DNA from: Diplonema japonicum
Lineage: Eukaryota; Protista; Euglenozoa: Diplonemea
Direction of reading: 5' to 3'
Assembly (NCBI GenBank): GCA_964019335.1
Contig: OZ025675.1
Span: forward strand, 124,001 to 188,000
DNA: 64,000 nt
Shown here: positions 4,215-59,925 of the stretch, in pieces
Numbering within the stretch: the first letter of the stretch is position 1
How the letters are laid out: each line of letters starts with the position of its first letter
Notes under the pieces: generated by a model
The model's database searches: none
Told to the model about the DNA's origin: nothing
What the model saw: only the letters and a program-made list of their open reading frames with translations
Translations under genes and position numbers: made by a program

Positions 4215-7109
4215 TCATAAAACATCTTTTTCTTCTCTGCTAGGCCGCAGCATTGCGCGGGATTGCGCGCGAAGCTCAGGATACTCTGATATGGTGGAGT
4301 CGAAGGCCCGTACCTTCACCTCATACACATTCAGCCCCAAACCTGTCACAGCAGCCTCCGCATGAAGCTCGAACCGAACACCGTCCATCGCACACAGCTC
4401 CTCAGCCACGCTTCCATACAGGCAGAACACATCATCCTTCACTCCCAATGAGCACAGCGACCCTGCCACATCCACACACCTACCTAAGACTGTCACGAAC
4501 CTCTGCACTCTCCCCCCGACTGTCCCATGCTTCACCTCACTGTTCGACAGCCCGATGTGAAGCTGAACATTTGATTCAGTCACCCTTTGGAGGGTGACGA
4601 CAAAGGAGAGGGAGTTCTCGATGTGTGTGGGGCAGGGACGGGAGGTGTTCCACCCAACAGCAACCCTGCTGCCCTGAACAGATGTAATCAAACCGTGTGA
4701 CCTCTCAGTGCACATCATCACCTTCGCAAGTGTGTCGTTCACAACGAGTGAAGTCTCCGCAGCATTGCACTCATCGGGAAGCCTTATGTCCAGCAGGCCC
4801 ACGCTTGCTGAGGATGACGACAGCACAGGGATTTCATGTGTGCCGCGCTGTGTGGCATCAGAGGGCCTCCTGGACGGATGGGAAAGATGCCTGTCCTCCC
4901 TGCTGAGGAGGAGCTGTGATTCGATGTAAGGTGCCCTGAACGAGAGATTCTCAGGAAGCAAGATTAAGGGATGCAAAGGGTCGGTCACACCCTTCAACTT
5001 CACCTCACCCATCGGTATCACAACAATGCCGGAACCATCATTTACATGCCTCATGACCTCCTCAGTGACAGCAACAGCACCCCCAACACAGGCCCCTTCC
5101 ATCCGAGCCGCCTTGTTCACAGTGTTCCCGAAGTAGTCGTACCTGCCTGTCAAGGTGTTCAGCTGCACATCAACCTCACCAAAGTGAACACCAATCCGAA
5201 CACGAAGCCCACACCAAGGACCGTTCCTGTCCCAAATGCAATGTTCAAGGAGGAGAAGCTCCTGTGGCCACGCTCCCTCCAGAAGCCTTTCCTGAACAGA
5301 CAGGGAAAAAGAGACAGCATCAGAAGGGTCCTCAAAGGCCACCATGAAGGAGTCCCCAATGGTCTTCACCTCGTACCCGTTGTGCTCAGAAAGACACTCC
5401 CGCATCACATTGTTGTGAACCTTTAGACCCTCCCTCATCCCCTCAGGGCAGGCCTCCCATGTTGCCGTCGATCCTTGGATGTCGGTGAAGACAAGGGCCG
5501 CTGTCTTTGTCATGAGACCAGGTACCTCAACCTGTCCTCCTACTTCCTCCTGAAATTCGCTGCTGATCTCTTTGTTCATCAACAAGGCACTTGGAAGGAA
5601 GGCCTTGTACTCCCTCAGACCCTTGATCGCCATGAGTAACCCATCAGTGACACGGGCCACCTCCTTCAGCATCACAGGTTTGTACATCGACTTCATGTGC
5701 GCCTCAGCCCTGTCGAGATCCATCGTCTCCAGATATTGATTCCCAACAACAAGTCTCCCTAGCGGACGGGAGATCAAAGTCACCTCCAACACAGCAATGA
5801 TAAGGTCGACCACGAAGATCACAACAGAGGCGATGATGAGCCGCACCAGTGCCGCGTACACCTTGTCGTTCACAGAGGACACAGTGCGCATCCAGAGAAG
5901 CTCGTACCTGATGACGCTTCCAATTGTGTCGTAGACACTAGTGAGTCGCAAAAAGTACTCCCCGCCGTCCAGCGATGTGTCAACGAAGTAGTCCTTCTTG
6001 TACAATGGGGTGGTCTTGTTCACATCAGAAGCAGCGAAGTACTCCCCGTACCGGATGTGAGTACGCATGTTTGTGGAGGAAAGATCTGCGGTGAAGAAGG
6101 TCCCTCGGGGTCGGACCTTGGAAGCATTCACAGCACTGGACACAGTGGGGCCAAGTTCATTGGGGTGCAGGAGACAATGTTCGCTTTTGGCATCCTCACA
6201 GTTGAAGCATGTCAATAAACACTCAAACTTGATGGCAGCGCCATCATGAATGGTGTGTGCGAAGACGTGATCCGCAGAGGAGTCCAGTACCACCAGCTCG
6301 GTATTTGCTGTTGAAAACTCACGAATGACGGCTATCCAGGGGCGGTACGTGAACCAGTTAACGAGGACGATCTCATACTGGGTGTCACCAGGAGCCCTGG
6401 GGAGGGAGTACCTGAGTTGATACTCTACATACGCATAGGGGGTCCCATCAACCGCATTCCAGAGGTAGGTCGGGGTCCACGTCCCAGTTCTTGGGATAGA
6501 CATCAAATGTTCGGTCACCCAATGTCTGGGGTCCTCTGACCACGAAGCGGAATACACCTCTGGTTCAGGTGTACCCGTCTCGTTGCCAATGGCTGTGGAG
6601 GTCCGCGTCCAGATTACTTGGAGGGTGCTGGAGTTGAGCTTCCCAACGGTCTGAGATCCAAGCCAGTACTTGGCTTCGGAACCGTTGACCTCAAGGACAG
6701 GGTCGTACCAGACGTACTGCCGACCGTAGCCGTCAATGTCCTCCCAAGGGGGGGACCCAAGCTTCGCTATGTGGTACCCTCCTCCGTAGTGGTACTCTGT
6801 CGACCGAAGAGCTGCAAACTTGTGTGCACTATAGGTACGTCTGATGTATTCAAGTCCCAACGAGAGGTTCATCACGTCGCCCCTGCTGAAGAGGAGGAGA
6901 TCTTCAAATGTAGTCTCTACCACGTTGTCTAACATCCCTGCAAGCCGAAGCTTTGCGCTTTTGGACACTGCCGCACTCGTGTCGTCCACAGCAGAGCGAA
7001 GGACCGAGATACTCTCCGCGTACAGTAGATACCCTGCCAGGAGGGAGATGAAGGTGGACACAATCGTTGAGACGAAGATGATCAGCTTCGATGGGACGTG
7101 GAGCGGCAT
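4215..7109 (-). CDS. Receptor-type adenylate cyclase, family A, catalytically complete (A1)
   Basis: 964-aa ORF: N-terminal TM, ~390-aa ectodomain, second TM, class III cyclase with VFTDIQGST, VKTIGDSFM and YDYFGNTVNKAARME (both metal Asp, ATP-specifying Lys/Asp, Asn/Arg), then a degenerate second cyclase domain. Confidence 0.93.
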   Translation of the reverse strand: MPLHVPSKLIIFVSTIVSTFISLLAGYLLYAESISVLRSAVDDTSAAVSKSAKLRLAGMLDNVVETTFEDLLLFSRGDVMNLSLGLEYIRRTYSAHKFAALRSTEYHYGGGYHIAKLGSPPWEDIDGYGRQYVWYDPVLEVNGSEAKYWLGSQTVGKLNSSTLQVIWTRTSTAIGNETGTPEPEVYSASWSEDPRHWVTEHLMSIPRTGTWTPTYLWNAVDGTPYAYVEYQLRYSLPRAPGDTQYEIVLVNWFTYRPWIAVIREFSTANTELVVLDSSADHVFAHTIHDGAAIKFECLLTCFNCEDAKSEHCLLHPNELGPTVSSAVNASKVRPRGTFFTADLSSTNMRTHIRYGEYFAASDVNKTTPLYKKDYFVDTSLDGGEYFLRLTSVYDTIGSVIRYELLWMRTVSSVNDKVYAALVRLIIASVVIFVVDLIIAVLEVTLISRPLGRLVVGNQYLETMDLDRAEAHMKSMYKPVMLKEVARVTDGLLMAIKGLREYKAFLPSALLMNKEISSEFQEEVGGQVEVPGLMTKTAALVFTDIQGSTATWEACPEGMREGLKVHNNVMRECLSEHNGYEVKTIGDSFMVAFEDPSDAVSFSLSVQERLLEGAWPQELLLLEHCIWDRNGPWCGLRVRIGVHFGEVDVQLNTLTGRYDYFGNTVNKAARMEGACVGGAVAVTEEVMRHVNDGSGIVVIPMGEVKLKGVTDPLHPLILLPENLSFRAPYIESQLLLSREDRHLSHPSRRPSDATQRGTHEIPVLSSSSASVGLLDIRLPDECNAAETSLVVNDTLAKVMMCTERSHGLITSVQGSRVAVGWNTSRPCPTHIENSLSFVVTLQRVTESNVQLHIGLSNSEVKHGTVGGRVQRFVTVLGRCVDVAGSLCSLGVKDDVFCLYGSVAEELCAMDGVRFELHAEAAVTGLGLNVYEVKVRAFDSTISEYPELRAQSRAMLRPSREEKDVL

Positions 7110-7995: not shown

Positions 7996-9795
7996 TCACA
8001 CCCACCCTGGCACTGAATGGGGTTGCGGGGGTGCCGAAGGCACCGGAGGTGCCTGTGCGGGCACCCACGGAGTGGGTTGGGGCACCGACGGAGTGGGTTC
8101 GGGCACCCACGGAGTGGCTGCCAGTTCCATCGGTCCCTCATTGTACGAAGCCCTCCTCTCTTTCTCTCTCCTCTTTTCTCCTCTTCTCTTCATTACAAAA
8201 TACCCACCGACTGCAGCAAGTATCAGAACGACTATCACAATTGGAATCACCACTTTTGGTGCCGACCCTCCTGTCTCCCCGCATGAGACCACATCATCAT
8301 AGCTCTTACTAGACTCTGATGAATCTGAAGGAAGCCCAGTGGACGGGTTGAGGTTCTGGCACATCGCGTCTGAAAACGAGAAACCAAAAGACCCGCACTC
8401 CTGCTTGAGTTCTCCAGCGCACTGCGACAGCGGTACAGCAGGGGCAGGGCATTCTTGGCCGACCTTCTTCCGCAAGATCTGCAAGTCACACTGCGACAAT
8501 GATGCAGATGGGCACACCTTGGACCTCGATATAAGTTCGGATGTAACCTGCTGGTACCCTGCGAGAACTGTCAGATCCTCCAGTACCACGTCTATCCCCG
8601 CCACTCCAATGAGAAAAGGTACCGATCCAGACCGGTCGTACGCTCCTATGGCGACAGTAACGAGGGATCCAAGCCCGAAGGCGTCTTCATATACTGTAGT
8701 CCAGCGGGGGCGGGTATCGTGCACACCAGCAGCAAGGTACAGATAATAATTCGTCATATATGTGAGGGGATCGTCCCCATCTGGGATGGCAGCCCACACC
8801 CCTTCATTGTCGCACGACATTTGTTGCGGGACGACGTGGTCAGCGTCTGTCCCCATGGAGTAGGTGAAGATCTTCACGCTTCCGAATATGGGTTTGACCT
8901 CTGCCTGCATGGCCGCGATGCCTTGTAGGATGTTGGAGTCCGTGGCGGCACCGTCCGTTAGAAACAGGATCGAGTGGGAGCACTTCGATGTCAGTTCATT
9001 GGAATGCCCGGACTTGAAGAGGTCGAAGGCTGCGCGAAGACCCTTCAAGAAGTACGTCGCACCAGCGGCAACGATTGTACCCAGCTCGTCTTGGAGCTTC
9101 TTGACGTTCTCCGCTGTTGCTTGAAGAGGGCTACCGGTGTTGACCAACGGCACAGCTTCGTTCGAGAAGACCACGATGCCCACATAATCGTTCAGGGTTA
9201 GTGTGTTGAGGACCTCGTGTGCAGCATTAACGACAGCCTGCAATCGCGACATAGATCCACGGGCACTGTTGTGGGGCCTCGACATAGAGCCAGATACATC
9301 AAGTACCAAGATGATGTCCTTTGGCCCCGAAGCGGCAGTGACGTACCAAGGACGGATCCGGGGGTCGTAGTCAGAGCACTTTCCATTGTCGCGTTCCTGC
9401 GGTATTCCTGGGAACATTCTCAGTGTCCCCGTCCAATGCGAGACGTACTGATAGGCTGTGATGCCGTAGGTGTTCTTGTTTGATTTGAAAGTTGATTCGA
9501 TCTCTTTTGACGAGCAAATGTCGGCCCTTAGCTCTGCGCTGTCGAAGTCGGAGCCTGCAGGGAGCCGCACCACGCTCGACTCAGTACCGCGAATCTTGCC
9601 TTCGGTGCACTCGAAACCATTTGCGGAATCAAACCTTGTCCCGCAAGCAGGGACCGAACAAGGACACTTCCCAACACCGCACCGCGATGAGTAAAGCGCT
9701 TCGTGGTGCGCAGCAAGCTTCTTGAGAGCCGTTTCTTTCTTCGTCACGAGGTCTTCTAAGGCACCACCGAGGCACAGCATTAGTATTAAGATCAT
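7996..9795 (-). CDS. alpha2delta/CACHD1-like type I membrane protein (dCache with inserted VWA domain)
   Basis: ATG at 9795 gives signal peptide MILILMLCLGG. YDPRIRPWYVTAASGPKDIILVLDVSGSM (Cache half plus MIDAS DxSxS), LFLTDG, second Cache half WTTVYEDAFGLG...GVAGIDV, TM helix, Pro-rich tail. Confidence 0.88.
   Translation of the reverse strand: MILILMLCLGGALEDLVTKKETALKKLAAHHEALYSSRCGVGKCPCSVPACGTRFDSANGFECTEGKIRGTESSVVRLPAGSDFDSAELRADICSSKEIESTFKSNKNTYGITAYQYVSHWTGTLRMFPGIPQERDNGKCSDYDPRIRPWYVTAASGPKDIILVLDVSGSMSRPHNSARGSMSRLQAVVNAAHEVLNTLTLNDYVGIVVFSNEAVPLVNTGSPLQATAENVKKLQDELGTIVAAGATYFLKGLRAAFDLFKSGHSNELTSKCSHSILFLTDGAATDSNILQGIAAMQAEVKPIFGSVKIFTYSMGTDADHVVPQQMSCDNEGVWAAIPDGDDPLTYMTNYYLYLAAGVHDTRPRWTTVYEDAFGLGSLVTVAIGAYDRSGSVPFLIGVAGIDVVLEDLTVLAGYQQVTSELISRSKVCPSASLSQCDLQILRKKVGQECPAPAVPLSQCAGELKQECGSFGFSFSDAMCQNLNPSTGLPSDSSESSKSYDDVVSCGETGGSAPKVVIPIVIVVLILAAVGGYFVMKRRGEKRREKERRASYNEGPMELAATPWVPEPTPSVPQPTPWVPAQAPPVPSAPPQPHSVPGWV
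8059..8117. repeat. Coding 21-bp tandem repeat x3 (TPWVPEP / TPSVPQP / TPWVPAQ)
   Basis: gggcacccacggagtgggttg / gggcaccgacggagtgggttc / gggcacccacggagtgg. Confidence 0.85.
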
Positions 9796-10285
9796 TATTT
9801 CTTTTTTTTTTTTTCCTTTAACCTTTGTAGAGATAGTCGGGGGGAGGGGGGCAATCTGAAAATGATAAAAATAAGAAATATATGAGTCGTCCGGCAAGCT
9901 CTTTCTTTTCTTCTTTTTCTTTTCGGGTTTGCCGTTAAAAGTACTAAAGCAGAAAACACATTGTGCCCTGTAGGTTGTCCGTCTGCACACAAAGTACCGG
10001 GCTACTTTTTTACTTAGAAACCCTTCAGACACTTTCAAGGCGAGCTCATATTAAAGGAGGACTGTAGGGGACTTAAAAAAAGTGTCTTAATTCCGCCTGA
10101 GGGAACTGGTCTCCCTTTGTACTACTAGTCGGCTAACAGCACAGTTTTCCATCTCACCGCGCCGCCGGTGAGAGTGCCACCATGGGTCATTACTCTAGGT
10201 TTTGAAATATTGGTACCTTGAAGTAAGCCAGCGACGTCCTTGACCCAGCGGTGTGGCAGTGTTTACTGCAGAGCCCTGAGGCTAG

Positions 10286-10847: not shown

Positions 10848-10878
<31 letters not shown>

Positions 10879-18541: not shown

Positions 18542-18664
18542 CGTACTCTTCTGTGTTTTCCCTTTTATGTCGGTGATGAAATATAAATGGAGTCGACGAT
18601 GGAACACCCCGCAACACTATGAAAGAAATGGGCATGGAAACACCCTTTCATTCTATATTATTGC

Positions 18665-22418: not shown

Positions 22419-22530
22419 GTTCTTTTTATGTCTCCCCTGTTGTGGAATAATAATGGCCAGCAGACAAAAGGCCGTAAGGCCATTAAAGAATACAAGAGCA
22501 TGGAAACACCCTTTCATTCTATATTATTGC

Positions 22531-35822: not shown

Positions 35823-38264
35823 TTACATCTCTGAGATCCTCTGCTGATCGGAGCAGGACCACGTGGCAGCGCGATTGAACACCATAGTTGTTTGTCCCTC
35901 TTGTAGATTGTTGGCAGCCCACAACTGGATATCGTTAGTACTTCCGTTCGTCTCGATGACATTCGGTGCCTTGCCGGCCAAGATGTCTTTCAATGCCAGA
36001 GCAATGGGGTCCTCCACAGAAGTGCCTTCGAGTTGGTACATCCATTCCTCCTCTTTCGCTTGAATCTCATTCTTAGCCTCACGAATAATGACCCCAACCT
36101 TGTTGCCCTCGACCTTCAGTATTGCCACCGCGAACATTTCAAATCTCCCTGTCATCCCCTCAGCCACAGTGGGGGACACCAAGGTGACGGAGCGACTGAG
36201 CGCGCTGCTTACAACACATGCCATGGCAGAGACCCCCCTTAGTTCCTGCAAGGATGCACCCTTTATCCCGAAACCCTTGCTTGTCGCGGACCCGAGGTTC
36301 CCCGCACTAAACTCCCCATACACTACAGCCATAGTAGGTGTTGCAGTTTGTGACACTGCTGACTTGGACATTAATCCACAGAAGCTGACAGCACGAAACA
36401 TGGGGTCAACGCAACGTAGCCCAACATTCCACGTGAGTGTAAAGACAAGAGGGTCAGAGACGGAGAACCCATGGGCAATCCCTCTTGTTGCCTGTGCCGC
36501 CTCATGCATCACCTCGACAAGTGTTCCGAACGACTTCTGTTGCAGATCAGCTGTGACGAAGGACAGCCTCACTACGGTGCCTCTGTAGCTCTGAAGCTGC
36601 ATCGAGAGGTTCTGACCCGCTGCTGCTGCTGCTGCTGATGCCGACATTCTCGAATGAGATTTCGTGGAGAACGTACGCTTGCTTCTTTCAGTCATTGAGT
36701 CATTGCCACTTTCATTTTCTGTTTCTTCCTCAACAAACAAGGTGTTTGGAAGGTAAGCCTTGTACTCCCTCAGGCCATTGATTGCCATGATCATCCCATC
36801 AGTGACACGGGCCACCTCCTGCACCATGATAGGCTTGTACATCGCATTCATGTGTGCCTCAGCCCCGTCAAGATCCATTATTCTCAAAAACCTGTTCCCA
36901 ACAACAAGCCTCCCCAGCGGACGGGCGATCAGAACAATCTCCAAAGCAGCAATGATAAGGTCGACCACGAAGATCAAAACAGAGGCGATGATGAGCTGCA
37001 CCAGTGCCGCGTACACCTTGTCGTTCACAGAGGACACAGTGCGCATCCAGAGAAGCTCGAAAGCTGTTCCCCCAGCGGTGTAGACATGGGTGAGTCGCAG
37101 GAAGTACTCCCCGCCGTCCAGCGATGTGTCAACGAAGTAGTCCTTCTTGTACAATGGGGTGGTCTTGTTCACATCAGAAGCAGCGAAGTACTCCCCGTAC
37201 TGGATGTGAGTACGCATGTTTGTGGAGGAAAGATCTGCGGTGAAGAAGGTCCCTCGGGGTCGGACCTTGGAGGCATTCACAGCACTGGAAACAGTGGGGC
37301 CAAGTTCATTGGGGTGCAGGAGGCAGTCTGATCCTTGCAAATTAATGCAGTTGAAGCATCTCGTGTAACATTCGAACTTGATGGCAGGCCCAGTGTAAAT
37401 GGTGTGCGCGAAGATCTTCCCAGCAGCTGAGTCGAGTGCCACAAGTTCTGTGTTCTCTGTTTCGAACTCACGGACAACAGTCGTCCACGGACGGTAGTTG
37501 AAAAAGTTCACTAAAACGATCTCATACCCTTGCAGCCAAGGGAGTGTGTGCCTGATGCGGTACTCGGTGTAGGCATAAGGGGACCCGTCCACAGCATTCC
37601 AGAAAAAGGTTGGGGACCACGATCCCTCGTAGGGCATTGTTCGCATCCAGCTCACCCAATGCTGTGGGTCCTCCCCCCACACTTGTCGATACACATCAGG
37701 GGCAAAGACACCTGTGTCGTTGTCCAGCGCCACGAACTCTCTGATCCACTCCACCCCACCAGTTGAGTTCCTGACACCGTAGGAGTCTCCATGGAGCCAG
37801 TACTTGGCATCATCGCCATTGGAGGCAACGACAGGGTCGTACCACACGTACTGCCTCCCGAACCACTCAGGGTCACTCCAAGGTGCAGCACACGTCGCGC
37901 ACGAGGGGTCGTACTGCTTCGCGAGGTAGTACCCTCCTCCATAGCCCCACTCTGTGGAACGGAGTGCTGCAAAGTACTGTGCAGCGTAGGTGATACGTAT
38001 GCTGTTCAACCCCAGCGAGATGTTCATGGCATCCGCTCTGTTGAAGAGGAGGACTGCCTCGCGTGAGCCAGCCACCACATCGTCCAGCATCCCTGCCAGC
38101 CGAAGCCTCGCACTCTTCGACGCCGCCGCACTGCTGTCGTCCACAGCAGAGCGCAGGACTGAGATACTCTCTGTGTACAGTAGAAACCCTGCCAGGAGGG
38201 AGATGAAGGTGGACACAATCGTTGAGACGAAGATGATCAGCTTCGATGGGACGTGGACCGGCAT
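35823..38264 (-). CDS. Family A receptor with catalytically dead cyclase-like tail (A2)
   Basis: 813 aa. Ectodomain nearly identical to A4 and A5. The tail lacks all cyclase catalytic motifs but keeps the TWN..RC, GNLGS and EEEWMYQLEG elements. Confidence 0.9.
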   Translation of the reverse strand: MPVHVPSKLIIFVSTIVSTFISLLAGFLLYTESISVLRSAVDDSSAAASKSARLRLAGMLDDVVAGSREAVLLFNRADAMNISLGLNSIRITYAAQYFAALRSTEWGYGGGYYLAKQYDPSCATCAAPWSDPEWFGRQYVWYDPVVASNGDDAKYWLHGDSYGVRNSTGGVEWIREFVALDNDTGVFAPDVYRQVWGEDPQHWVSWMRTMPYEGSWSPTFFWNAVDGSPYAYTEYRIRHTLPWLQGYEIVLVNFFNYRPWTTVVREFETENTELVALDSAAGKIFAHTIYTGPAIKFECYTRCFNCINLQGSDCLLHPNELGPTVSSAVNASKVRPRGTFFTADLSSTNMRTHIQYGEYFAASDVNKTTPLYKKDYFVDTSLDGGEYFLRLTHVYTAGGTAFELLWMRTVSSVNDKVYAALVQLIIASVLIFVVDLIIAALEIVLIARPLGRLVVGNRFLRIMDLDGAEAHMNAMYKPIMVQEVARVTDGMIMAINGLREYKAYLPNTLFVEEETENESGNDSMTERSKRTFSTKSHSRMSASAAAAAAGQNLSMQLQSYRGTVVRLSFVTADLQQKSFGTLVEVMHEAAQATRGIAHGFSVSDPLVFTLTWNVGLRCVDPMFRAVSFCGLMSKSAVSQTATPTMAVVYGEFSAGNLGSATSKGFGIKGASLQELRGVSAMACVVSSALSRSVTLVSPTVAEGMTGRFEMFAVAILKVEGNKVGVIIREAKNEIQAKEEEWMYQLEGTSVEDPIALALKDILAGKAPNVIETNGSTNDIQLWAANNLQEGQTTMVFNRAATWSCSDQQRISEM

Positions 38265-45134: not shown

Positions 45135-47984
45135 TTAGAAGGCGCATATGGTATCGCTACTGCCGCTCGAGCTAAAGGCATCAGCCTTCACCTCATACAC
45201 ATTCAACCCAAAACCTGACACAGCAGCCTCCGCATGAAGCTCGAACTGCATCTCTGTTTTGCACAACTCCTCCGCCACGCTCCCATACAGGCAGAACACA
45301 TCATCCTTCACTCCCAATGAGCACAGCGACCCTGCCACATCCACACACCTACCTAAGACTGTCACGAACTTCTGATTCCTTCCCCCGACTGTCCCATGCT
45401 TCACCTCACTGTTCGACAGCCCGATGTGAATACAGCACAGAGATCGGCTAAATAGAGCTCGGAAGAGAGTGACGACGAAGGAGAGGGAGTTCTCGATGTG
45501 TGTGGGGCAGGGACGGGAGGTGTTCCACCCAACAGCGACTCTGCTTCCTTGAACAGAGATGAGGACCCCATGTGACCTCTCAGTGCACATCATCACCTTC
45601 GCAAGTGTGTCGTTAATTAGTTGTGAGGTCTCCGCAGCATCGCACTCATCGGGAATCCTAGTATCCAGCAGGCCCACACTTGCTACTGTCTTTGACAAAA
45701 GTACTACCTCTTGTGTGCTATGTCTTGACGAAGTGACAGAGCTCTTCCTTACCAGTCTGACAAGGCGCCTGTCCCCCCTGCAGAGCAGAAGCTGTGACTC
45801 GATGAAAGGTACCCTGCCAGAGAGACTGCTGGGAAGCAAGATGAAGGGATGCACGGGGTCAGACACACCCTTCAGCCTCACCTCACCCATTGGTATCACA
45901 ATAGCTTCATTGGTCTGTGCCCCAATCTTCTCCATGACCTCCTCAGTGACAGCAACAGCACCCCCAACACAGGCCCCTTCCATCCGAGCCGCCTTGTTCA
46001 CAGTGTTCCCGAAGTAGTCGTACCTGCCTGTCAAGGTGTTCAGCTGCACATCAACCTCACCAAAGTGAACACCAATCCGAACACGAAGCCCACACCAAGG
46101 ACCGTCCTCATCCCAAGCACAGTGGTCAAGGAGGAGAAGCTCCTGTGGCCAGTTGCAGTTCACGAGCCCTTCCTGAACAGACAGGGAAAAGGAGACAGCA
46201 TCAGAAGGGTCCTCGAAGGCCACCATGAAGGAGTCCCCAATGGTCTTCACCTCGTACCCGTTGTGCTCAGACACACACTCCCGCGTCACCTTGTTGTGAA
46301 CCTTCAGACCCTCCCTCATCCCCTCAGGGCAGGCCTCCCATGTTGCCGTCGATCCTTGGATGTCGGTGAAGACAACAGCTGCCTGCCCCGTTTTGAGACC
46401 AGGAAAAGGGAAATCCCTCAAGTGTTCCGTCGTGTGGACAGGATAAGTTTCAACAAACAAGGTGTTTGGAAGGTAAGCCTTGTACTCCCTCAGACCATTA
46501 ATCGCCATGAGTAACCCATCAGTGACAAGAGCCACCTCCTGCACCATGATAGGTTTGTACATCGACTTCATGTGTGCTTCTGCCTTGTCCAGATTCATCG
46601 TCTCAAGAAACCTGTTCCCAACAACAAGCTTCTCAAGTGGACGGGCGATCAGGGTCACCTCCAACACAGCAATGATAAGGTCGACCACGAAGATCACAAC
46701 AGAGGCGATGATGAGCTGCACCAGTGCCGCGTACACCTTGTCGTTCACAGAGGACACAGTGCGCATCCAGAGAAGCTCGTAGGTGGTGCTAGAGGCGGTG
46801 TAGACATGGGTGAGTCGCAGGAAGTACTCCCCGCCGTCCAGCGATGTGTCAACGAAGTAGTCCTTCTTGTACAATGGGGTGGTCTTGTTCACATCAGAAG
46901 CAGCGAAGTACTCCCCGTACCGGATGTGGGTACGCATGCTTGTGGAGGAAAGATCTGCGGTGAAGAAGGTCCCTCGGGGTCGGACCTTGGAGGCATTCAC
47001 AGCACTGGAAACAGTGGGGCCAAGTTCATTGGGGTGCAGGAAGCAGTCTGATCCTTGCAAATTAATGCAGTTGAAGCATCTCGTGTAACATTCGAACTTG
47101 ATGGCAGGCCCAGTGTAAATGGTGTGCGCGAAGATCTTCCCAGCAGCTGAGTCGAGTGCCACAAGTTCTGTGTTCTCTGTTTCGAACTCACGGACAACAG
47201 TCGTCCACGGACGGTAGTTGAAAAAGTTCACTAAAACGATCTCATACCCTTGCAGCCAAGGGAGTGTGTGCCTGATGCGGTACTCGGTGTAGGCATAAGG
47301 GGACCCGTCCACAGCATTCCAGAAGTAGGTCGGGGACCACGATCCCTCGTAGGGCATTGTTCGCATCCAGCTCACCCAATGTTCTGTGTCCTCCCCCCAC
47401 ACTTGACGATACACATCAGGGGCAAGGATGCCTGTGTCGTTGTCCAGCGCCACGAACTCTCTGATCCACTCCACCCCACCAGTTGAGTTCCTGACACCGT
47501 AGGAGTCTCCATGGAGCCAGTACTTGGCATCATCGCCATTGGAGGCAACGACAGGGTCGTACCACACGTACTGCCTCCCGAACCACTCAGGGTCACTCCA
47601 AGGTGCAGCACACGTCGCGCACGAGGGGTCGTACTGCTTCGCGAGGTAGTACCCTCCTCCAAAGCCCCACTCTGTGGAACGGAGTGCTGCAAAGTACTGT
47701 GCAGCGTAATTGATACGTATGCTGTCCAGCCCCAGCGAGATGTTCATGGCATCCGCTCTGTTGAAGAGGAGGACTGCCTCGCGTGAGCCAGCCACCACAT
47801 CGTCCAGCATCCCTGCCAGCCGAAGCCTCGCACTCTTCGACGCCGCCGCACTGCTGTCGTCCACAGCAGAGCGAAGGACTGAGATACTCTCTGTGTACAG
47901 TAGAAACCCTGCCAGGAGGGAGATGAAGGTGGACACAATCGTTGAGACGAAGATGATCAGCTTCGATGGGACGTGGAGCGGCAT
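45135..47984 (-). CDS. Receptor-type adenylate cyclase, family A, catalytically complete (A4)
   Basis: ATG at 47984. Ectodomain near-identical to A2 and A5; intact VFTDIQGST / VKTIGD / YDYFGNTVNKAARME plus degenerate second domain. Confidence 0.93.
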   Translation of the reverse strand: MPLHVPSKLIIFVSTIVSTFISLLAGFLLYTESISVLRSAVDDSSAAASKSARLRLAGMLDDVVAGSREAVLLFNRADAMNISLGLDSIRINYAAQYFAALRSTEWGFGGGYYLAKQYDPSCATCAAPWSDPEWFGRQYVWYDPVVASNGDDAKYWLHGDSYGVRNSTGGVEWIREFVALDNDTGILAPDVYRQVWGEDTEHWVSWMRTMPYEGSWSPTYFWNAVDGSPYAYTEYRIRHTLPWLQGYEIVLVNFFNYRPWTTVVREFETENTELVALDSAAGKIFAHTIYTGPAIKFECYTRCFNCINLQGSDCFLHPNELGPTVSSAVNASKVRPRGTFFTADLSSTSMRTHIRYGEYFAASDVNKTTPLYKKDYFVDTSLDGGEYFLRLTHVYTASSTTYELLWMRTVSSVNDKVYAALVQLIIASVVIFVVDLIIAVLEVTLIARPLEKLVVGNRFLETMNLDKAEAHMKSMYKPIMVQEVALVTDGLLMAINGLREYKAYLPNTLFVETYPVHTTEHLRDFPFPGLKTGQAAVVFTDIQGSTATWEACPEGMREGLKVHNKVTRECVSEHNGYEVKTIGDSFMVAFEDPSDAVSFSLSVQEGLVNCNWPQELLLLDHCAWDEDGPWCGLRVRIGVHFGEVDVQLNTLTGRYDYFGNTVNKAARMEGACVGGAVAVTEEVMEKIGAQTNEAIVIPMGEVRLKGVSDPVHPFILLPSSLSGRVPFIESQLLLCRGDRRLVRLVRKSSVTSSRHSTQEVVLLSKTVASVGLLDTRIPDECDAAETSQLINDTLAKVMMCTERSHGVLISVQGSRVAVGWNTSRPCPTHIENSLSFVVTLFRALFSRSLCCIHIGLSNSEVKHGTVGGRNQKFVTVLGRCVDVAGSLCSLGVKDDVFCLYGSVAEELCKTEMQFELHAEAAVSGFGLNVYEVKADAFSSSGSSDTICAF

Positions 47985-50709: not shown

Positions 50710-50748
<39 letters not shown>

Positions 50749-50834
50749 GCATACCAGATTTGTACTTATTTTGTTCATGTGTCGGAACGTTACGGAATGT
50801 TACGGGAACAATACAAAAAAAAAAAAAAAGATTA

Positions 50835-52500: not shown

Positions 52501-52536
<36 letters not shown>

Positions 52537-53386
52537 TAGTTTGGCGCTTCATTTGTTTGTGCGCACAAGTGGCAAAAAATAGAAGTTCGGCAGTGGTAAG
52601 GGAAACTACTTTTAAGCCGGGGGGGGCGGGGGACGGGGGGGTTTCTTTTCGATTTTCTTTCTTTCTTTCGGAAATCATGTGTTATCTATTTAAATGTTTC
52701 GTAGTGACAGTAAATAATAATAAATACTCCCCTACCTGTGAAATAATTGGGGGGGAGGGTAGGGGGCCGGGGGGTGAATGAGGAGTGAAGGCGAAAAAGA
52801 AATAGAAGAGAGAGCTTTAATTGAATCGTTGGGGGGGGGGGGGGGAAGAAAAGTTTCTTTTTTTTCTTTCTTTCTCGATACTTTTTAATGCAGCATTTCT
52901 TTTGTTTTCTTTCTTTCGTTTCTTCCCCCCCCCCCCCCTTCTTTCCCCTTTTTTCTTTGAATATTACTCACACACTTTAAGCACAAAACAGTTACAAAAA
53001 AAATTAAAAGAAAAAAATTAAAAAAATCTTCTCTTTGAGCAGATAAACCTATTGGCAAAGGAACATGCGTGCAAAACCTTAGAACCCGTTTTCACCAAAA
53101 AAGAGGCCTTTAGCGAAAGGCAGTGCTGCTCATTCCCACAGCCTGTGATATCTGGAACATTTGAGGAGCAGCACGACCTGAAACCTGCAATTCCCATCAC
53201 AGCCGCCTTACCCATAGGCATTTCAAATGAAGAATAAAAAACGGGGGGGGGGGGGAATCATAATTTCGGGTTTCTTTCAGCGAGGCACCTGCCCCCCTGG
53301 TGCCTATTTTTCGCAACGGGTGGGGGGATGGGGGGAGGGTTTACAAAAAAAAAAAAAGAAAATCAGAAAAATAAAAGTAAAAAAAG

Positions 53387-54110
53387 AGTCGGCTGATTGT
53401 TTGTGCAAGCCGTTTTCACCTACAGTAGGGGTAAACGGGCAAGCTGCTCTCTACTCTTTTTTGCAATAACAATTCTTTTCAAAAATTTGTTTACTTGTTC
53501 CAGCAAAAAAAAAAAAAAAAAAAAAAAAAGAAAAATTCATTTCCTGGTTTTTTTCCCATCTTAGAGCAAATTCCGGGGATTGGAATTAAAAAAAAAAAAT
53601 ATATATATATATATGAGTTAAAGGAGGCCGGTGTTGGCGGCGCCCTGCTTGAAAAAAAAAAAAAAAATGAGTTAAAGGAAGTCTTTGTGAGACGCCCCCT
53701 TGTTCTCATTTTCTACCTGCACCTATCCCCCCAAAAAAAAATGTTTGTGCACAGCCGGGGTTAACCTGTAGAAGGATAAGCCCAACAATGCTACCACTAC
53801 TCTTTTTAAGCAATAACAATTCATCATCAATATTGTTTTTTCTCGTTCATGCAAAAAGAAAAAAAAAAAAGAAGAAGAAGAACTGGCCGTTGTTTGTACG
53901 TGCCGGGTAAAACCTGGAGAAGTTTTGTAAAACCCGAAACACGTTGCCAATGTTTCCCCTTTTGTTTAGACAAGTTCTTTTTCAAAAAAAAAAAAAGAAG
54001 AAAACAAAATAAATATGAATTCTCATCAGCAGCGGTTAGTTGGTGGTCTTGCCGGCCTTCTCCCAGCCTGGCCGCTTTTCCCCTTCTTTCTCTTGCCCAT
54101 TGTCCTTTCA
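53387..54110 (-). repeat. Pile-up of short dispersed repeat ends separated by A-runs
   Basis: R1-type ends at 53613 and 53667; 53742-53830 matches 28985-29070; 53877-53975 matches 11410-11500 and 3355-3420; 54025-54100 is R1-like. Confidence 0.75.
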
Positions 54111-54196
54111 AAAAAGGGAAAAAAAAAGGGACGTTTTCTTTTGTTACTTCTCTCCTGCTGGAGAATTAGGAGCCACAATTGTTGCATTTTCGAATA

Positions 54197-54536
54197 CCGG
54201 ATTTGTACTTATATTGTTATGTGAAAAGAAATTTGAAAAAGGTACATAATATTTACAGAACACAAGAAGCCATGGAGCGACATGTTTCATTCAGAGTATA
54301 GGGTTGGATTTTTTTAAATAATTATTTATGTTGGAACTGCTTTAAGGTGGTAAATAAGTAGGAAAACGTGACTTTGATTTTAGTGGAGCCTGTCCTGGGG
54401 GGGGGGATCAGGTTTTTTGTATTGTTCTGTAAAAAGCCCCAAGTTGGGTCCAAAATCCGAAAAGGGTACATAATTTATACAGCACACTAAATCCCCAGAC
54501 CATTATTAAAACTGAACAATATAAATACAAATCCGG
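54197..54536. mobile_element. TA-flanked MITE with CCG terminus
   Basis: TA|CCGGATTTGTACTTATATTGTT ... AACAATATAAATACAAATCCGG|TA; related end at ~50752. Confidence 0.75.
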
Positions 54537-55137
54537 TATAAAAAAAAAAAAAAAAAAGCTTTGGAAGACTATTCGTCTTTAGTTCTTATCTCTCGCATGA
54601 TTTCTTTCTTTATTTCCTTCTTTCTTCTTGAAATATTGCCAGAAGGTCTAGAATCCGTGTAGGCTAATTACAAAAAAAAAAATACTAAAATAAAATGGGG
54701 CTTTGATTGCAACACTTTAAGCGCGCAACGAAGCACGAACTACCTACTTATAACAGGGGGCGCTCCTCGGCCGAGCAGTAGCTTCTTCTGCGTTCCGCGT
54801 CGTGTCCTTAATGCGTGCGGTGTGCTCAACCCCAGCCGGGACGTCCCGGGTAACCAAGATTCTGCGCTCGTGCAGTTTGCTGCCTGTTCCCTGAGCATCT
54901 GCGTTACGTTCTTCCACTCGGGTGCTACCGGTGATGACCGACGAGGAGGTCATGTTATCCCCGCGACCTAAAAAAAAAAAAAAAAAAAAAAAAAAACTAC
55001 TTACAGGATTCAGGAAACCGTAAGGCAGGGACTTATGTTTTTCTTTCTCATTTTCTTTTTCCTTTTGTTCACGACTTAACAAATCCTTTGTCTTTGGAAA
55101 TACGTTTAAAGAGGGGGGGGGGGGGGGGGGGGGCCTT

Positions 55138-55432
55138 TTTGCCCTTTTTCAGGCTCTTCGCCAAGGCATTTTGGGCCCTTAAAAAAACTTTAACCACCCT
55201 AAAAGTGCCCACAAATCACCCAAATCCCCGTTTCCCGATGGTTTCCGGCCCCAAAAGTGCCCAGAATCATGTTCTAATTTTGGGCCCAAAATTAGAACAT
55301 GATTCTGGGCACTTCTGGGGCCGGAAACCATCGGGAAACGGGGGTTTGGGTGATTTGTGGGCACTTTTGGGGTGGTTAAAGTTTTTTTAAGGGCCCAAAA
55401 TGCCCTTGGCGAAGAGCCTGAAAAAGGGCAAA
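55138..55432. repeat. Near-perfect ~295-bp spacerless palindrome (foldback element)
   Basis: Centre ...CATGTTCTAATTTTGGG|CCCAAAATTAGAACATG... at 55284/55285; arms match with few mismatches. Confidence 0.9.
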
Positions 55433-55457
55433 TAACGACCCCCTTATGACCCCCCCA

Positions 55458-55638
55458 GGGCTATGCTGGCAGGAAACGTGGAAACGTTTCCGTTTCCGTT
55501 CCCGTTTCCATACTTTTCAAAATTCTTATGGAAACGCGTTTCCTTCTTAAGGAAACATAAGGAAACGTTTCCGTTTCCGTTTCCGTTTCCCTTTTTTCAA
55601 AAAATGCATGGAAACGCGTTTCCATGCCAGCATAGCCC
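55458..55638. mobile_element. MITE with GGGCTATGCTGGCA TIRs and internal GGAAAC/GTTTCC arrays
   Basis: GGGCTATGCTGGCAGGAAACG ... CGTTTCCATGCCAGCATAGCCC. Confidence 0.8.
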
Positions 55639-56497
55639 TAGGGGGGGGGGGGGGGTCCCGTATATTTCTTTTATCAGAAGAACTCCTTTTCCCCCTTTTG
55701 TTTTTTCAAAGACTCGTTCTTGCAAAAAAAAAAAAAATAATTCTTTTTTTTTTTCTCCTCCTTTCTTTTTGTGACAAATAAATTTGCCGTGAAAAGAATT
55801 CCAAGTGAGTGTCAGAGAAGACGTTAGTCTCTACTGAAAATCATGTACTTTGTTTCAGTTTGGGACTTCTTTTTTCATTTGCACGGTATATACATATATA
55901 TAAATATGAGTTAAAGGGGATCCTTGCGAGACCCCCTTGTTCTCATTCACTACTATATAAGCAGCTATGATTGCTAGAATAGAAAAAAAGTGAAGAAAAA
56001 AAAACTAAGGCTGACGTTCCACATCGCGCTGTCCTCTTTACAAAAGAAAAAAAAAAAGCAAAATATATAAGAGATGGAGGCGCACCTCGTCCGAGCTCTA
56101 GCTTCTGCATTCCGCTTTGTGTCCTTAATGCGTGCGGTGCTAACCCAGGGATGACCAAGATTCCAGAAGCTATTCCCATTCTTCCACTCGGGCGCCGGTG
56201 ATGACCGACGAGGAGGTCAACAGCGAACAACCACCAGGAGACACAAAAAAAAAAAATGAAATAGCCGATGTCACTCTTAGCTTCTGCGCAATGGGTTACA
56301 AAACCGTTGTTACCAATAAAGAGTTTATTTGTATAACGCATAACACTGCTGACATTCTGTTTTTTTTTTTTTTTTTATCTGTTCATCATAAAAGGGGTGG
56401 TGTGGAATGTGTTGCAAGCGAAAAAAAAAGCTTCTGCGGGTTTTCTAGCCCGCTTCGTCCTATTGGTTAAAAGAAAAAAATACAAAAAAAAAAAAAA

Positions 56498-57445
56498 TAT
56501 ATATATGAGTTAAAGGAAGTCTTTGTGAGACGCCCCCTTGTTCTCATGCTCTACCTGCACCTATCCCCCTTCAGCAGCGGTTTCTCCTTCTTCGGTGGTC
56601 GTGCCGGCCTCCTCCCCAGCTTGGCTACTTTTTCCCTTCTTTCCTTTGCCCATTGCTTCCCCAGCTCCTCCAGGTCGTACTTGGTCTTCGTTGATGCAAA
56701 GATTGCTCTTCTACTCCACCCGATCACCGCCTTCGTCCCTCCGATTGATCGCAGCGTATGTACTCTCTTGCATGGTTCAGCAGGGAAGGCCCTCCTTCCT
56801 TTCACCTTCTTCTGCAGTCTCCCTAGTTCCCATGTGTTCCACACCTTCTTCATCACCGTGTGCAGTCTCCTGGCCTTCTGTCGCACCTCTGCCAACTCCC
56901 CTAGCTTCCCTCCAAGGGATTTCTGGGTCACGTTTTCGAAATCCAGCGCCAGCTCCACCGTCGACACTGCCGTGCTTCTGTTCCCTCCATACCAGCGCAG
57001 CTGCTTGAGCCATTTCAGCACCGGCTTCGTGTACTCCTTCAGGGTGTTGCCGGTCTGCAGCCTCGCGAACTCCTCCTCTGTTGGTGCTGGGTGTGCCTCC
57101 CCCTCCGTGATCTCCAGCCATTGGTGTGTCCGGTAGATCTGCTGCCTCTTTGCCTGCAAGGCTGCGTCGCGTTCCCCCACCACAGCCAGCAGGTAACGCT
57201 GGGTCTTCTCGAGCCTGTCCTTGTCCTCCTTGGCCGCTTTCCCTCGGGAGGATGCCATGGAGCCTCATGCATGGTTCTAGGCCTGTTCGTGTCGTGCCTG
57301 CATGTGCCTCCCGTTGCCTTACTTCGACAGCCAGTTCGCACTCCCACAGTGCATGCTCCAGGATGTTGGATACCTGTTGCATCTGACCGCATACGTCGCA
57401 GCGTGCCGTTGCGGGTTCGTCCTGCTGCCTCTGCTCCGCCAGCAA
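56498..57445 (-). mobile_element. Longest 5'-truncated non-LTR retroelement end (family R1): CCHC knuckle, basic C-terminus, terminal hairpin
   Basis: RCDVCGQMQQVSNILEHALWECE (CCHC-type), frameshift, ORF ending KGDRCR* at 56551, hairpin 56505-56547, then (AT)n and a T-run on the sense strand. Confidence 0.82.
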
Positions 57446-57468
57446 AAAAACGAAAGCAAAAAAACGAA

Positions 57469-57506
<38 letters not shown>

Positions 57507-57510
57507 CCCT

Positions 57511-59925
57511 TCACCAGGTAGCAGACTGGGTGAAGGTCATCACCGAACGCCCCATCCGAATATTGCTCACAGCCCATTCCTGTACGTCATAAGGTTCTAT
57601 AATAGGACCTATCACTGGCTTTGTTTTTGGATCTGACAGGATCTGTTCAAGAGCTTCGCCCACAGGATCGTTAACCTCGGCACCTTCCAGCTGGTACATC
57701 CACTCCTCCTCGTTTAGTTCGATACTCCTCCCAAGCTCGTAAAGGAGCATTGTTTTCTTCACCCCGACGACCTTAAGCAAGGTGACGGCAAGGACTTTAA
57801 ACCTACCGAAAACGCCCTCTACGACAGCCTTTGGTGCCAAGGCAGTGGGTCTCATGAGCGATTTGCAAACAATATCCGCAGCGGCTGAGATACCTTTCAA
57901 CTCCAACAGAGCAGAGCCTCTCATCCCGAAACCCTTTTGTGTAGCAGACCCGAGGTTTCCAACAAGGAATGTCCCATGGGATACCGCTAAGGCAGGCTTT
58001 GCTATCTGTGTTACTCTAGGTGAGTCGGTCATCGCTTCACAGAAGGCGACGGCGCGGATCATGGACTCAGAGCAGCGGCTCCCCACATTCCATGTAAGGG
58101 TGAAGACGAGAGGTTCGGATACAGAGAACCCATGAGCGAGCCCTCTTGTTGCCTGTGCCGCCTCTTGCATCACCTCGACAAGTGTTCCAAAATTGTCCGG
58201 ATAGCCACTGTCACCCATGCATGCTGCGTAAGACAGCCTCACCACAGTGCCTCTGCAGTTCTGCAGCTGCATCGAGAGATTCTGACCTGCTGCTGGTGTT
58301 GCAACCGTTTTCGTCCTCGACCGAGTGTATGTGTCAATACTTGAGTTTTCCGTGCTCAGTTTGCCTTCGCTCACTTCCTCGTCAGTCTCGTTAACGAATA
58401 AAGTGCCAGGGAGGAAGGCCTTGTACTCCCTCAGGCCCTTGATCGCCATGAGTAACCCATCAGTGACACGGGCCACCTCCTGCACCATTATAGGTTTGTA
58501 CATCGACTTCATGTGTGTTTCTGCGCCGTCGAGATCCATCGTCTCAAGAAACCTGTTCCCAACAACAAGCTTCTCAAGTGGACGGGCGATCAGGGTCACC
58601 TCCAAAGCAGCAATGATAAGGTCGACCACGAAGATCACAACAGAGGCGATGATGAGCTGCACCAGTGCCGCGTACACCTTGTCGTTCACAGAGGACACGG
58701 AACGCATCCAGAGAAGCTCGAAAGTGGTGTCAGAGGCGGTGTAGACATGGGTGAGACGCAGGAAGTACTCCCCGCCGTCCAGCGATGTGTCAACGAAGTA
58801 GTCCTTCTTGTACAATGGGGTGGTCTTGTTCACATCAGAAGCAGCGAAGTACTCCCCGTACCGGATGTGGGTACGCATGTTTGTGGAGGAAAGATCTGCG
58901 GTGAAGAAGGTCCCTCGGGGTCGGACCTTGGAAGCATTCACAGCACTGGAAACAGTGGGGCCAAGTTCATTGGGGTGCAGGAGGCAGTCTGATCCTTGCA
59001 AATTAATGCAGTTGAAGCATCTCGTGTAACATTCGAACTTGATGGCAGGCCCAGTGTAAATGGTGTGCGCGAAGATCTTCCCAGCAGCTGAGTCGAGTGC
59101 CACAAGTTCTGTGTTCTCTGTTTCGAACTCACGGACAACAGTCGTCCACGGACGGTAGTTGAAAAAGTTCACTAAAACGATCTCATACCCTTGCAGCCAA
59201 GGGAGTGTGTGCCTGATGCGGTACTCGGTGTAGGCATAAGGGGACCCGTCCACAGCATTCCAGAAAAAGGTTGGGGACCACGATCCCTCGTAGGGCATTG
59301 TTCGCATCCAGCTCACCCAATGTTCTGTGTCCTCCTCCCACACTTGACGATACACATCAGGGGCAAAGACACCTGTGTCGTTGTCCAGCGCCACGAACTC
59401 TCTGATCCACTCCACCCCACCAGTTGAGTTCCTGACACCGTAGGAGTCTCCATGGAGCCAGTACTTGGCATCATCGCCATTGGAGGCAACGACAGGGTCG
59501 TACCACACGTACTGCCTCCCGAACCACTCAGGGTCACTCCAAGGTGCAGCACACGTCGCGCACGAGGGGTCGTACTGCTTCGCGAGGTAGTACCCGCCTC
59601 CATAGCCCCACTCTGTGGAACGGAGTGCTGCAAAGTACTGTGCAGCGTAGGTGATACGTATGCTGTCCAGCCCCAGCGAGATGTTCATGGCATCCGCTCT
59701 GTTGAAGAGGAGGACTGCCTCGCGTGAGCCAGCCACCACATCGTCCAGCATCCCTGCCAGCCGAAGCCCTGCACTCTTCGACGCCGCTGCACTGTTGTCG
59801 TCCACAGCAGAGCGAAGGACCGAGATACTCTCCGCGTACAGTAGATACCCTGCCAGGAGGGAGATGAAGGTGGACACAATCGTTGAGACAGAAATGATCA
59901 GCTTCGATGGGACGTGGACCGGCAT
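57511..59925 (-). CDS. Family A receptor with a second, diverged dead cyclase-like tail (A5)
   Basis: ATG at 59925 (MPVHVPSK). Ectodomain near-identical to A2 and A4. Tail homologous to but clearly diverged from A2/A3; EEEWMYQLEG retained. Confidence 0.9.
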   Translation of the reverse strand: MPVHVPSKLIISVSTIVSTFISLLAGYLLYAESISVLRSAVDDNSAAASKSAGLRLAGMLDDVVAGSREAVLLFNRADAMNISLGLDSIRITYAAQYFAALRSTEWGYGGGYYLAKQYDPSCATCAAPWSDPEWFGRQYVWYDPVVASNGDDAKYWLHGDSYGVRNSTGGVEWIREFVALDNDTGVFAPDVYRQVWEEDTEHWVSWMRTMPYEGSWSPTFFWNAVDGSPYAYTEYRIRHTLPWLQGYEIVLVNFFNYRPWTTVVREFETENTELVALDSAAGKIFAHTIYTGPAIKFECYTRCFNCINLQGSDCLLHPNELGPTVSSAVNASKVRPRGTFFTADLSSTNMRTHIRYGEYFAASDVNKTTPLYKKDYFVDTSLDGGEYFLRLTHVYTASDTTFELLWMRSVSSVNDKVYAALVQLIIASVVIFVVDLIIAALEVTLIARPLEKLVVGNRFLETMDLDGAETHMKSMYKPIMVQEVARVTDGLLMAIKGLREYKAFLPGTLFVNETDEEVSEGKLSTENSSIDTYTRSRTKTVATPAAGQNLSMQLQNCRGTVVRLSYAACMGDSGYPDNFGTLVEVMQEAAQATRGLAHGFSVSEPLVFTLTWNVGSRCSESMIRAVAFCEAMTDSPRVTQIAKPALAVSHGTFLVGNLGSATQKGFGMRGSALLELKGISAAADIVCKSLMRPTALAPKAVVEGVFGRFKVLAVTLLKVVGVKKTMLLYELGRSIELNEEEWMYQLEGAEVNDPVGEALEQILSDPKTKPVIGPIIEPYDVQEWAVSNIRMGRSVMTFTQSATW

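Follow-up and report, generated by a model that had tools for sequence, protein, structure and literature searches.

Analysis of a 64,000-nucleotide stretch of the genome of a diplonemid, Diplonema japonicum YPF1604 (the window; assembly peDipJapo1.1, contig C28, OZ025675.1, positions 124001-188000) uncovered five two-transmembrane (2-TM) receptor genes, A1-A5 (family A), that combine three ectodomain types with one active and two dead cyclase-related tails (Table 1). The locus is part of a large, tandemly arrayed D. japonicum receptor family, in which gene conversion or unequal exchange between neighbours has copied one sensor onto different tails. The evidence as a whole is best explained by shuffled double-Cache receptors whose output is either a cyclase or a maintained pseudo-cyclase, a reading to which we give a probability of about 0.62. 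The assembly rests on 102x PacBio HiFi coverage with a quality value (QV) of 59.4 (PMC13598402), and every long open reading frame (ORF) listed for the window lies on the minus strand, as is expected of polycistronic euglenozoan arrays.

Sensor segments copied between receptor genes

A family A protein appears to be a type-II-like receptor: TM1 is followed by an extracellular double-Cache domain, then by TM2 and a linker, predicted to be helical and HAMP-like, that closes with LREYKA[FY]LP; one of two cytoplasmic modules comes next. The first consists of a complete class III cyclase domain with six catalytic residues (CHD1), followed by a degenerate second domain (CHD2); the second lacks CHD1 and carries a single pseudo-cyclase domain homologous to CHD2, then a short C-terminal extension opening with an invariant EWMY motif. 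An earlier reading of the same DNA, made from its letters (the original prediction), had proposed that five such genes share an architecture and mix their parts, and all five ORFs were recovered where it had placed them, on the minus strand.

Codon alignments and sliding nucleotide identity sort these genes into constant and variable blocks. Residues 1-45 are 82-100% identical across A1-A5 (92-100% over the first 30 codons), while residues 46-320 exist in three types, A1 having X, A3 having Y, and A2, A4 and A5 having Z. The Z copies are 96-100% identical to one another (dS 0.02-0.04), whereas X and Y show 42-74% identity to Z. The central block (residues 325-390) is again common to all five genes (93-100% identical), the other four window genes being 97-98% identical to A4, with a dS to A4 of 0.02-0.11 in the window and 0.05-0.21 elsewhere in the C28 cluster. 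Through TM2 and the linker, A2 equals A3, and A4 resembles A5. Among the tails, P1 is 92% identical between the A2 and A3 proteins (dS 0.089, against 1.03 for their ectodomains), the A5 tail is 51% identical to that of A2 (dS 1.54), and those of the active genes A1 and A4 share 74% identity, their catalytic core being nearly invariant. The combinations described in the original prediction are thus all present: ectodomain Z on active A4 and on two different dead tails, tail P1 with Z in A2 and with Y in A3, and the active tail with X in A1 and with Z in A4. Because Z, at a dS of 0.03, is far younger than the three tails that it stands on, the recent events were copies of a sensor segment into genes with differing tails.

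Maximum chi-square analysis resolves a junction in each of two genes. The A2 switch lies inside the family-wide invariant central block (informative sites 236:2 to its left and 15:355 to its right; Fisher p 1.7e-147), and the A4 switch lies at the LREYKA[FY]LP motif (315:18 and 56:448; Fisher p 2.8e-144). Genome-wide, family A comprises about 27 full genes on six contigs, and 22 beyond those of the window (labelled L) were analysed, together with outgroups. An active tail is found in 5 of the 27 (A1, A4, L005, L021 and L022) and a dead tail in the other 22. On the ectodomain tree the active genes are scattered, with five changes of output, at least three of them forced by well-supported branches; A4 is nested within A2/A5, the dead L003 is the sister of L005, and active members are missing from most ectodomain clades. 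The approximately unbiased (AU) test rejects congruence of ectodomain and tail trees in both directions. For ectodomain data it rejects a clade of active genes (p 5e-13) and a clade of A2 and A3 (p 3e-6); for tail data it rejects A2 with A5 (p 8e-16) and the grouping of L001, L002, L004 and L006, which have one common ectodomain (p 2e-4). The last four carry two different dead tails, L001/L002 against L004/L006, with an ectodomain dS of 0.03-0.06 and a saturated tail dS. L008 and L009 likewise differ in their dead tails (ectodomain dS 0.018, tail dS 1.38), and L006/L007 and L011/L014 show the opposite pattern of decoupling.

The constant blocks are conserved in protein sequence across the family, so that strong purifying selection on the protein, with no recombination, might be thought to account for them. 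Their synonymous sites, however, are also near-identical within the C28 cluster (dS 0.03-0.3 for the N-terminal, central and TM2/linker blocks, against more than 1 for the distal ectodomain), and the same blocks have a dS of 0.6-1.5 in copies on other contigs. Together with the significantly conflicting topologies, this makes selection alone very improbable. Chimeric assembly of collapsed, near-identical paralogues is also unlikely, indeed scarcely credible. The junctions do lie in near-identical blocks, where assemblers can switch copies, and unitig contigs broke at the repeats and left the junctions unbridged; but the assembly has 102x HiFi coverage at QV 59, mean reads of about 9 kb exceed the identical blocks of about 0.2-1.5 kb, the same decoupling recurs in 27 genes on six contigs, and the unique A3 and A4 segments and the spacer between them are present in unitigs from three independent studies. 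Sharp breakpoints, incongruent trees and the block-wise contrast in dS therefore give strong support to the proposal that the wiring is reshuffled by recombination. The constant parts evolve in concert, while the variable module escapes or is copied wholesale. Exchange among neighbours with junctions in the conserved blocks homogenises the constant parts, and the same exchange carries the variable membrane-distal Cache module from gene to gene, placing one sensor on an active and on different dead tails.

The nature of the shared sensor is indicated by structure prediction. In the AlphaFold2 (AF2) model of the A4 head (predicted local distance difference test score, pLDDT, 80), a double PAS-like fold with a long N-terminal helix lies between two TM helices, and the top Foldseek matches (E 1e-7 to 1e-4) are all dCache domains that bind ligand in chemoreceptors and sensor histidine kinases of bacteria. 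The family A ectodomain is accordingly modelled as a double-Cache sensor, in which the variable segment covers the membrane-distal Cache module and the invariant block covers the membrane-proximal one; the distal module probably binds ligand. Pfam dCache_1 (PF02743) gave no match in the family A ectodomain even at E<=10, and related diplonemid cyclases carry PF02743.

Active and pseudo-cyclase tails

Among the proteins of the window, only A1, A4 and the family B protein B1 have a Pfam cyclase domain above threshold (E 1e-31 to 1e-32; PF00211 scores of 108-113 bits against a cut-off of 21.9 bits). Their CHD1 contains all six catalytic residues, namely two metal-binding Asp, the substrate Lys and Asp, and the transition-state Asn and Arg. 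Active tails from A1, A4, L005, L021, L022 and B1 all carry the motifs FTD, KTIGD, YDYFG and TVNKAAR without variation, and CHD1 is predicted to be a catalytically competent class III nucleotidyl cyclase. Its protein sequence is almost invariant, even between families A and B, and its dS is 0.17-0.5. Because this core dS is low while the adjoining linker is saturated, conversion of the catalytic core is suggested to cross receptor-family boundaries. Between the two families, the CHD1 cores of A1, A4 and B1 (Table 1) differ by a dS of 0.39-0.5, with a saturated linker alongside.

CHD2 aligns to the C2 domains of the adenylyl cyclases AC5 and AC8 and to soluble guanylyl cyclase beta (E 3e-4 to 8e-3), scores just below threshold against PF00211 (E 1e-3), and has Guanylate_cyc proteins as 29 of its 30 language-model neighbours. 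In those alignments the positions of the substrate Asp, the Asn and the Arg are taken by Thr, Asp and Ser, and direct reading of the CHD2 alignment indicates further losses, of the substrate Lys and of the second metal Asp; on this basis CHD2 is read as a degenerate cyclase domain. The CHD1-CHD2 tandem tail is common in diplonemids, with 84-99% coverage in many matches, and the D. papillatum annotation says merely "Adenylate cyclase". PF00211 has at least 151 matches across the D. japonicum genome. In D. papillatum and other diplonemids the tandem tail is elsewhere fused to ammonium transporters (PF00909), bacterial solute-binding proteins (PF13416/PF01547), Kelch repeats and Pfam-detectable dCache domains.

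The dead tails of A2, A3 and A5 have no Pfam cyclase domain. The AF2 model of the A2 tail (pLDDT 70.6) matched 172 PDB chains at E<=1e-3 in Foldseek, and the top matches listed are all cyclase catalytic domains (best E 1e-8, template-modelling score 0.74), so that the dead tail is predicted to have a true cyclase fold. Catalytic motifs are absent from all 22 family A dead tails and from the best 150 homologues; in alignments the Asp, Asn and Arg are replaced by Gly, Gln/Leu and Gly, and the one residue commonly kept is the second metal Asp. The division into live and dead outputs made in the original prediction is therefore correct at the level of residues and of fold.

Profile comparison relates the pseudo-domain to CHD2 in particular. 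With profiles of 102 pseudo-domains and of 15 CHD1/CHD2 pairs from across the genome, hhalign gave a probability of 99.0% for the pseudo-domain against CHD2 (E 7.6e-17, 201 columns) and 12% against CHD1 (E 5.7e-4), and W-N-x4-C and G-x-G..K.F motifs are common to the pseudo-domain and CHD2. Shallow alignments recovered only the linker motif or a weak CHD2 match (E 2e-3). Because the profile homology is specific to CHD2, the dead tail is best classified not as a decayed CHD1 but as a CHD2-type domain that lacks CHD1 and is followed by an extension starting with EWMY. This motif stands at the same position in all 22 family A dead tails and is among the invariant dead-tail motifs kept across families A and B. 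A match of the extension to DUF1935 was weak (E 2e-3), occurred in only 1 of 18 members and was judged unconvincing.

Dead tails could in principle be decaying pseudogenes left by cyclase duplication, and the missing Pfam matches and catalytic residues of A2, A3 and A5 are what such decay would leave. All 22 family A copies are nevertheless intact ORFs of about 800 residues, even where dS is saturated. Their pairwise dN/dS has a median of 0.25 (81 informative pairs), far from the value of about 1 that the original prediction had named as counting against it, and in family B it is 0.2-0.4 in heads and tails alike. The invariant motifs are kept in both families, and the module occurs across diplonemids and in full-length transcripts. 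A word-based homologue search with the dead tail alone found no match; a full hidden Markov model scan then gave 1027 cluster representatives, 241 of them at E<=1e-10. Sampled sources were transcriptomes of D. japonicum, D. ambulator, Flectonema neradi, Sulcionema specki and Artemidia motanka, the D. papillatum genome and large contigs. Of the 150 best homologues, 144 have EW[ML]Y, at some 70-100 residues before the C-terminus, and many different N-termini precede the module in proteins of 329-1713 residues. Two EukProt D. japonicum transcripts, P0004 and P0011, match genome copies on contigs C77 and C97 at 100% identity over their full length. Decay is thus most improbable: the dead tails are under purifying selection as part of a module found across diplonemids, and the low dN/dS, the diplonemid-wide spread and the conserved EW[ML]Y argue that they are functional.

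Two further EukProt transcripts, P0001 and P0003, have only 65% and 85% identity to the genome and were not used as expression evidence; contamination between samples, Trinity chimeras of paralogues and copies missing from the assembly are possible explanations. Loose ends of poly-T at 42169 were likewise set aside as evidence of poly(A), since the genome has a T-run there.

Family B is represented in the window by six polytopic receptors (B1-B6, about 6 TM each) and was said to repeat the live/dead logic of family A. An active gene, B1, does stand beside five dead ones, B2-B6; the Pfam cyclase matches of B4-B6 are all below threshold. The same-sensor part of that claim did not survive, because the B1 membrane domain is only about 32% identical to that of B2 in protein (33-50% in sliding nucleotide identity), so that B1 is not a live twin of the dead B genes. 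Mosaicism by conversion is real here too: the B4 and B6 tails are 100% identical from about residue 381 on, with a dS of 1.1 between their heads, and B3 and B4 have a common 239-nucleotide tract at 100% identity. The genome holds at least 135 matches to the B-type dead tail alone and at least 131 to the B-type membrane head, and the family B heads have no detectable sequence similarity to known families.

An output in its own right or a decoy

In a class III cyclase dimer, each active site joins the metal-binding Asp residues of one protomer to the Lys, Asp, Asn and Arg of the other (PMC6027212). Because the six residues are complete in CHD1 and essentially absent from CHD2 and the pseudo-domain, catalysis should be confined to CHD1-CHD1 pairs, and a CHD1 facing a CHD2-type domain would be dead at both sites. 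In the scheme that we propose, ligand at the distal Cache module would act through TM2 and the linker on the dimer of tails. In CHD1 receptors this relay would set CHD1-CHD1 pairing and hence cyclic AMP (cAMP) synthesis; in pseudo-cyclase receptors it would set the state of a CHD2-type dimer that has no catalysis, along with the EWMY extension, and this dimer would then signal by binding a partner, either some effector or the CHD1 of active receptors.

The original prediction saw the dead-tail receptors as decoys or dominant negatives of the active receptor with the same sensor, acting through competition for ligand or through mixed CHD1/pseudo-CHD dimers. We find the heterodimer idea chemically sound, and heterodimer inhibition plausible. 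A4 and A5 have 93-98% nucleotide identity in four segments reaching to residue 505 (the TM1 block, distal Cache module, central block and TM2/linker), falling to 79-93% in short linker windows, and mixed A4/A5 dimers are plausible because the two are near-identical through the parts that dimerise such receptors. A CHD1/pseudo-CHD pair would be dead at both sites, since CHD2 and the pseudo-CHD lack the Lys, Asp, Asn, Arg and one metal Asp. A second adjacent active/dead pair with the same sensor, L005/L003, lies just outside the window (ectodomain dS 0.16), and in Trypanosoma brucei the total cyclase activity is reduced by an engineered dead ESAG4 (PMC6027212). Against this, there are 22 dead genes to 5 active ones, and in most ectodomain clades an active partner is missing; identical sensors also stand on two different dead tails (L001/L002 against L004/L006, and L008 against L009); the dead tail keeps its own invariant EWMY, conserved across diplonemids; and many other sensors, for which there is no live twin, are joined to the module. 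Since 5 of the 27 genes are active, moreover, one or two mixed pairs among the five recent sensor-sharing groups are what chance conversion between neighbours would give. We therefore argue that active/dead pairing is not the organising rule of family A, and we hold decoy action to be a possible but doubtful account of the dead-tail receptors as a class. The 22:5 excess, the sensor clades without an active member, the sensors common to different dead tails, the invariant EWMY and the many unrelated sensors together favour a pseudo-cyclase tail that is an output module in its own right; we rank this first and inhibition of CHD1 in trans as its main rival.

A tentative and, in our judgement, improbable reading elaborates that rival. 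CHD2-type domains could be built-in competitors for the CHD1 dimer interface, the CHD2 in cis holding CHD1 in an inactive CHD1-CHD2 pair until bound ligand permits CHD1-CHD1 pairing, and the pseudo-cyclase receptors delivering the same inhibitor in trans. If this were true, hundreds of pseudo-cyclase receptors would form an inhibitory class under sensors of their own, stimulatory and inhibitory classes would meet directly at the cyclase with no need of G proteins, and whether a given ligand reads "on" or "off" would be settled by gene conversion.

Several points weigh against shuffled receptors with a maintained pseudo-cyclase output. The mechanism of that output is purely our inference. The HAMP assignment of the linker depends only on low-confidence helices: helices after TM2 are predicted at residues 411-461, 465-475 and 480-496, with pLDDT <50 beyond residue 463 and no Pfam HAMP match. 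The CHD2 set used in hhalign was chosen by the W-N-x4-C motif, which anchors its register, and the EWMY extension has no PDB match and no detectable relative. Unitig contigs over 42100-48099, of unknown library type, broke at every repeat and so neither bridged the junctions nor showed expression, and an exact look-up of the A1-A5, B1 and B2 proteins in the protein collection found none of them.

Related systems, neighbouring genes and implications

The closest comparison within the Euglenozoa is with the trypanosomatid ESAG4/GRESAG4 cyclases, which are also an expanded multigene set of membrane receptors with a class III cyclase domain active as a dimer, and in which an over-expressed, catalytically dead copy is a dominant negative (PMC6027212). 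Those proteins have one TM helix, a Venus-flytrap (periplasmic-binding-protein-like) ectodomain and a single CHD, whereas family A has two TM helices, a predicted double-Cache domain, the tandem CHD1-CHD2 and a natural, conserved class of pseudo-cyclases. Bacterial dCache receptors and kinases (such as PctD, TlpQ, TlpA/TlpC and MkcA) resemble family A in fold and in their topology of TM1, double-Cache domain, TM2 and helical linker; their membrane-distal module binds ligand, and in family A the same module varies. Unlike them, family A ends in cyclase or pseudo-cyclase outputs and not in a methyl-accepting chemotaxis protein (MCP) or kinase module, its similarity lies below Pfam detection, and it has extra Cys-rich insertions that suggest disulfide bonds.

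A tandem of cyclase-fold domains, one of them degenerate, is likewise present in the membrane adenylyl cyclases of mammals (C1-C2 pseudo-heterodimer) and in soluble guanylyl cyclase alpha/beta, and CHD2 aligns best to the C2 domains of AC5 and AC8. In mammals, however, C1 and C2 complement each other in one active site, whereas here a CHD1-CHD2 pair should not be catalytic and a CHD1-CHD1 pair would be required. Chytrid rhodopsin-guanylyl cyclases (NeoR/RGC) similarly mix sensors on a common cyclase dimer, as obligate heterodimers of different sensor subunits (PMC8815786); they differ in having rhodopsin sensors, two catalytic subunits, no CHD2-type pseudo-domain and no evidence of shuffling by gene conversion. 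Family B resembles the mycobacterial Rv1625c-type 6TM cyclases in its polytopic anchor, helical linker and CHD, and differs in heads without detectable similarity to known families and in the pseudo-cyclase/EWMY tail of most window copies. In literature searches on diplonemid cyclases we found no published description of this receptor system, and the genome note (PMC13598402) is silent on cyclases. New here are the predicted double-Cache fold with a variable distal module, the tail of CHD1 and a degenerate CHD2, and the dead tail homologous to CHD2 with its EWMY extension.

Table 1 Receptor genes, segments and recombination junctions in the window
Feature	Position	Strand	Description
A1	4215-7109	-	2-TM receptor, putative double-Cache ectodomain X + active tail; CHD1 4830-5513, degenerate CHD2 4218-4829; PF00211 E 1.6e-32, six catalytic residues
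B1	12301-14487	-	polytopic (~6 TM) receptor; active CHD1 12862-13554 (predicted) + CHD2 12304-12861
B2	14815-16605	-	tandem polytopic receptor, pseudo-cyclase domain + EWMY tail
B3	16778-18607	-	tandem polytopic receptor, pseudo-cyclase domain + EWMY tail
B4	18665-20446	-	tandem polytopic receptor, pseudo-cyclase domain + EWMY tail
B5	20676-22517	-	tandem polytopic receptor, pseudo-cyclase domain + EWMY tail
B6	22531-24402	-	tandem polytopic receptor, pseudo-cyclase domain + EWMY tail
A2	35823-38264	-	ectodomain Z + dead tail P1; pseudo-CHD + EWMY 35826-36614, preceded by disordered linker
A2 junction	37305..37209	-	Z-like to A3/P1-like, inside family-wide invariant central block (putative membrane-proximal Cache)
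A3	42217-44673	-	ectodomain Y + dead tail P1
A4	45135-47984	-	ectodomain Z + active tail; CHD1 45705-46394, CHD2 45138-45704
A4 head	46494-47984	-	modelled as TM1, double-Cache domain, TM2, helical linker
A4 junction	46541..46494	-	A5-like receptor to A1-like active tail, at LREYKA[FY]LP motif
Central block (residues 325-390 of A4)	46815-47012	-	corresponds to putative membrane-proximal Cache module
A5	57511-59925	-	ectodomain Z + dead tail P2 (51% identical to P1)

Other genes of the window are interspersed with the receptors. Between A1 and B1 (7996-10038, minus strand) lies a gene whose protein has a von Willebrand factor A domain, a TM helix at the C-terminal end and a tail rich in proline. 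A 916-residue protein encoded at 26000-28750 (minus strand) carries a Ser/Thr kinase domain at its N-terminus (PF00069, E 1e-47), its long C-terminal region matching nothing in Pfam, and a BspA-type leucine-rich-repeat gene (PF13306, E 3e-18) is found at 29622-30635 (minus strand); a 460-bp piece of the latter is duplicated between A2 and A3 (39326-39785) at 99.8% identity. GC-rich ORF fragments without a Pfam match stand directly downstream of A2 and A5 (34183-35388 and 56525-57577), accompanied by a 204-bp repeat at 99% identity (32267-32470 and 56486-56689). Fragments and repeat look like retroelement remnants and might mark duplication or conversion boundaries. The gap from A4 to A5 (48000-56500), about 8.5 kb of AT-rich DNA (38-43% GC) with no ORF longer than 237 residues, is unusually gene-poor for the array.

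Diplonemids are among the most abundant and diverse heterotrophic protists of the ocean and, to our knowledge, almost nothing is known of how they sense their environment. The present analysis shows that, for a large part of their receptors, the output end is a conserved pseudo-enzyme and not a cyclase, and that this pseudo-enzyme is the counterpart of the second domain found in every active tail examined (family A and B1). Sensor modules are actively copied between the two output classes. The family thus offers a concrete, testable entry to the logic of cAMP signalling without G proteins, and a natural case of combinatorial receptor evolution through gene conversion.

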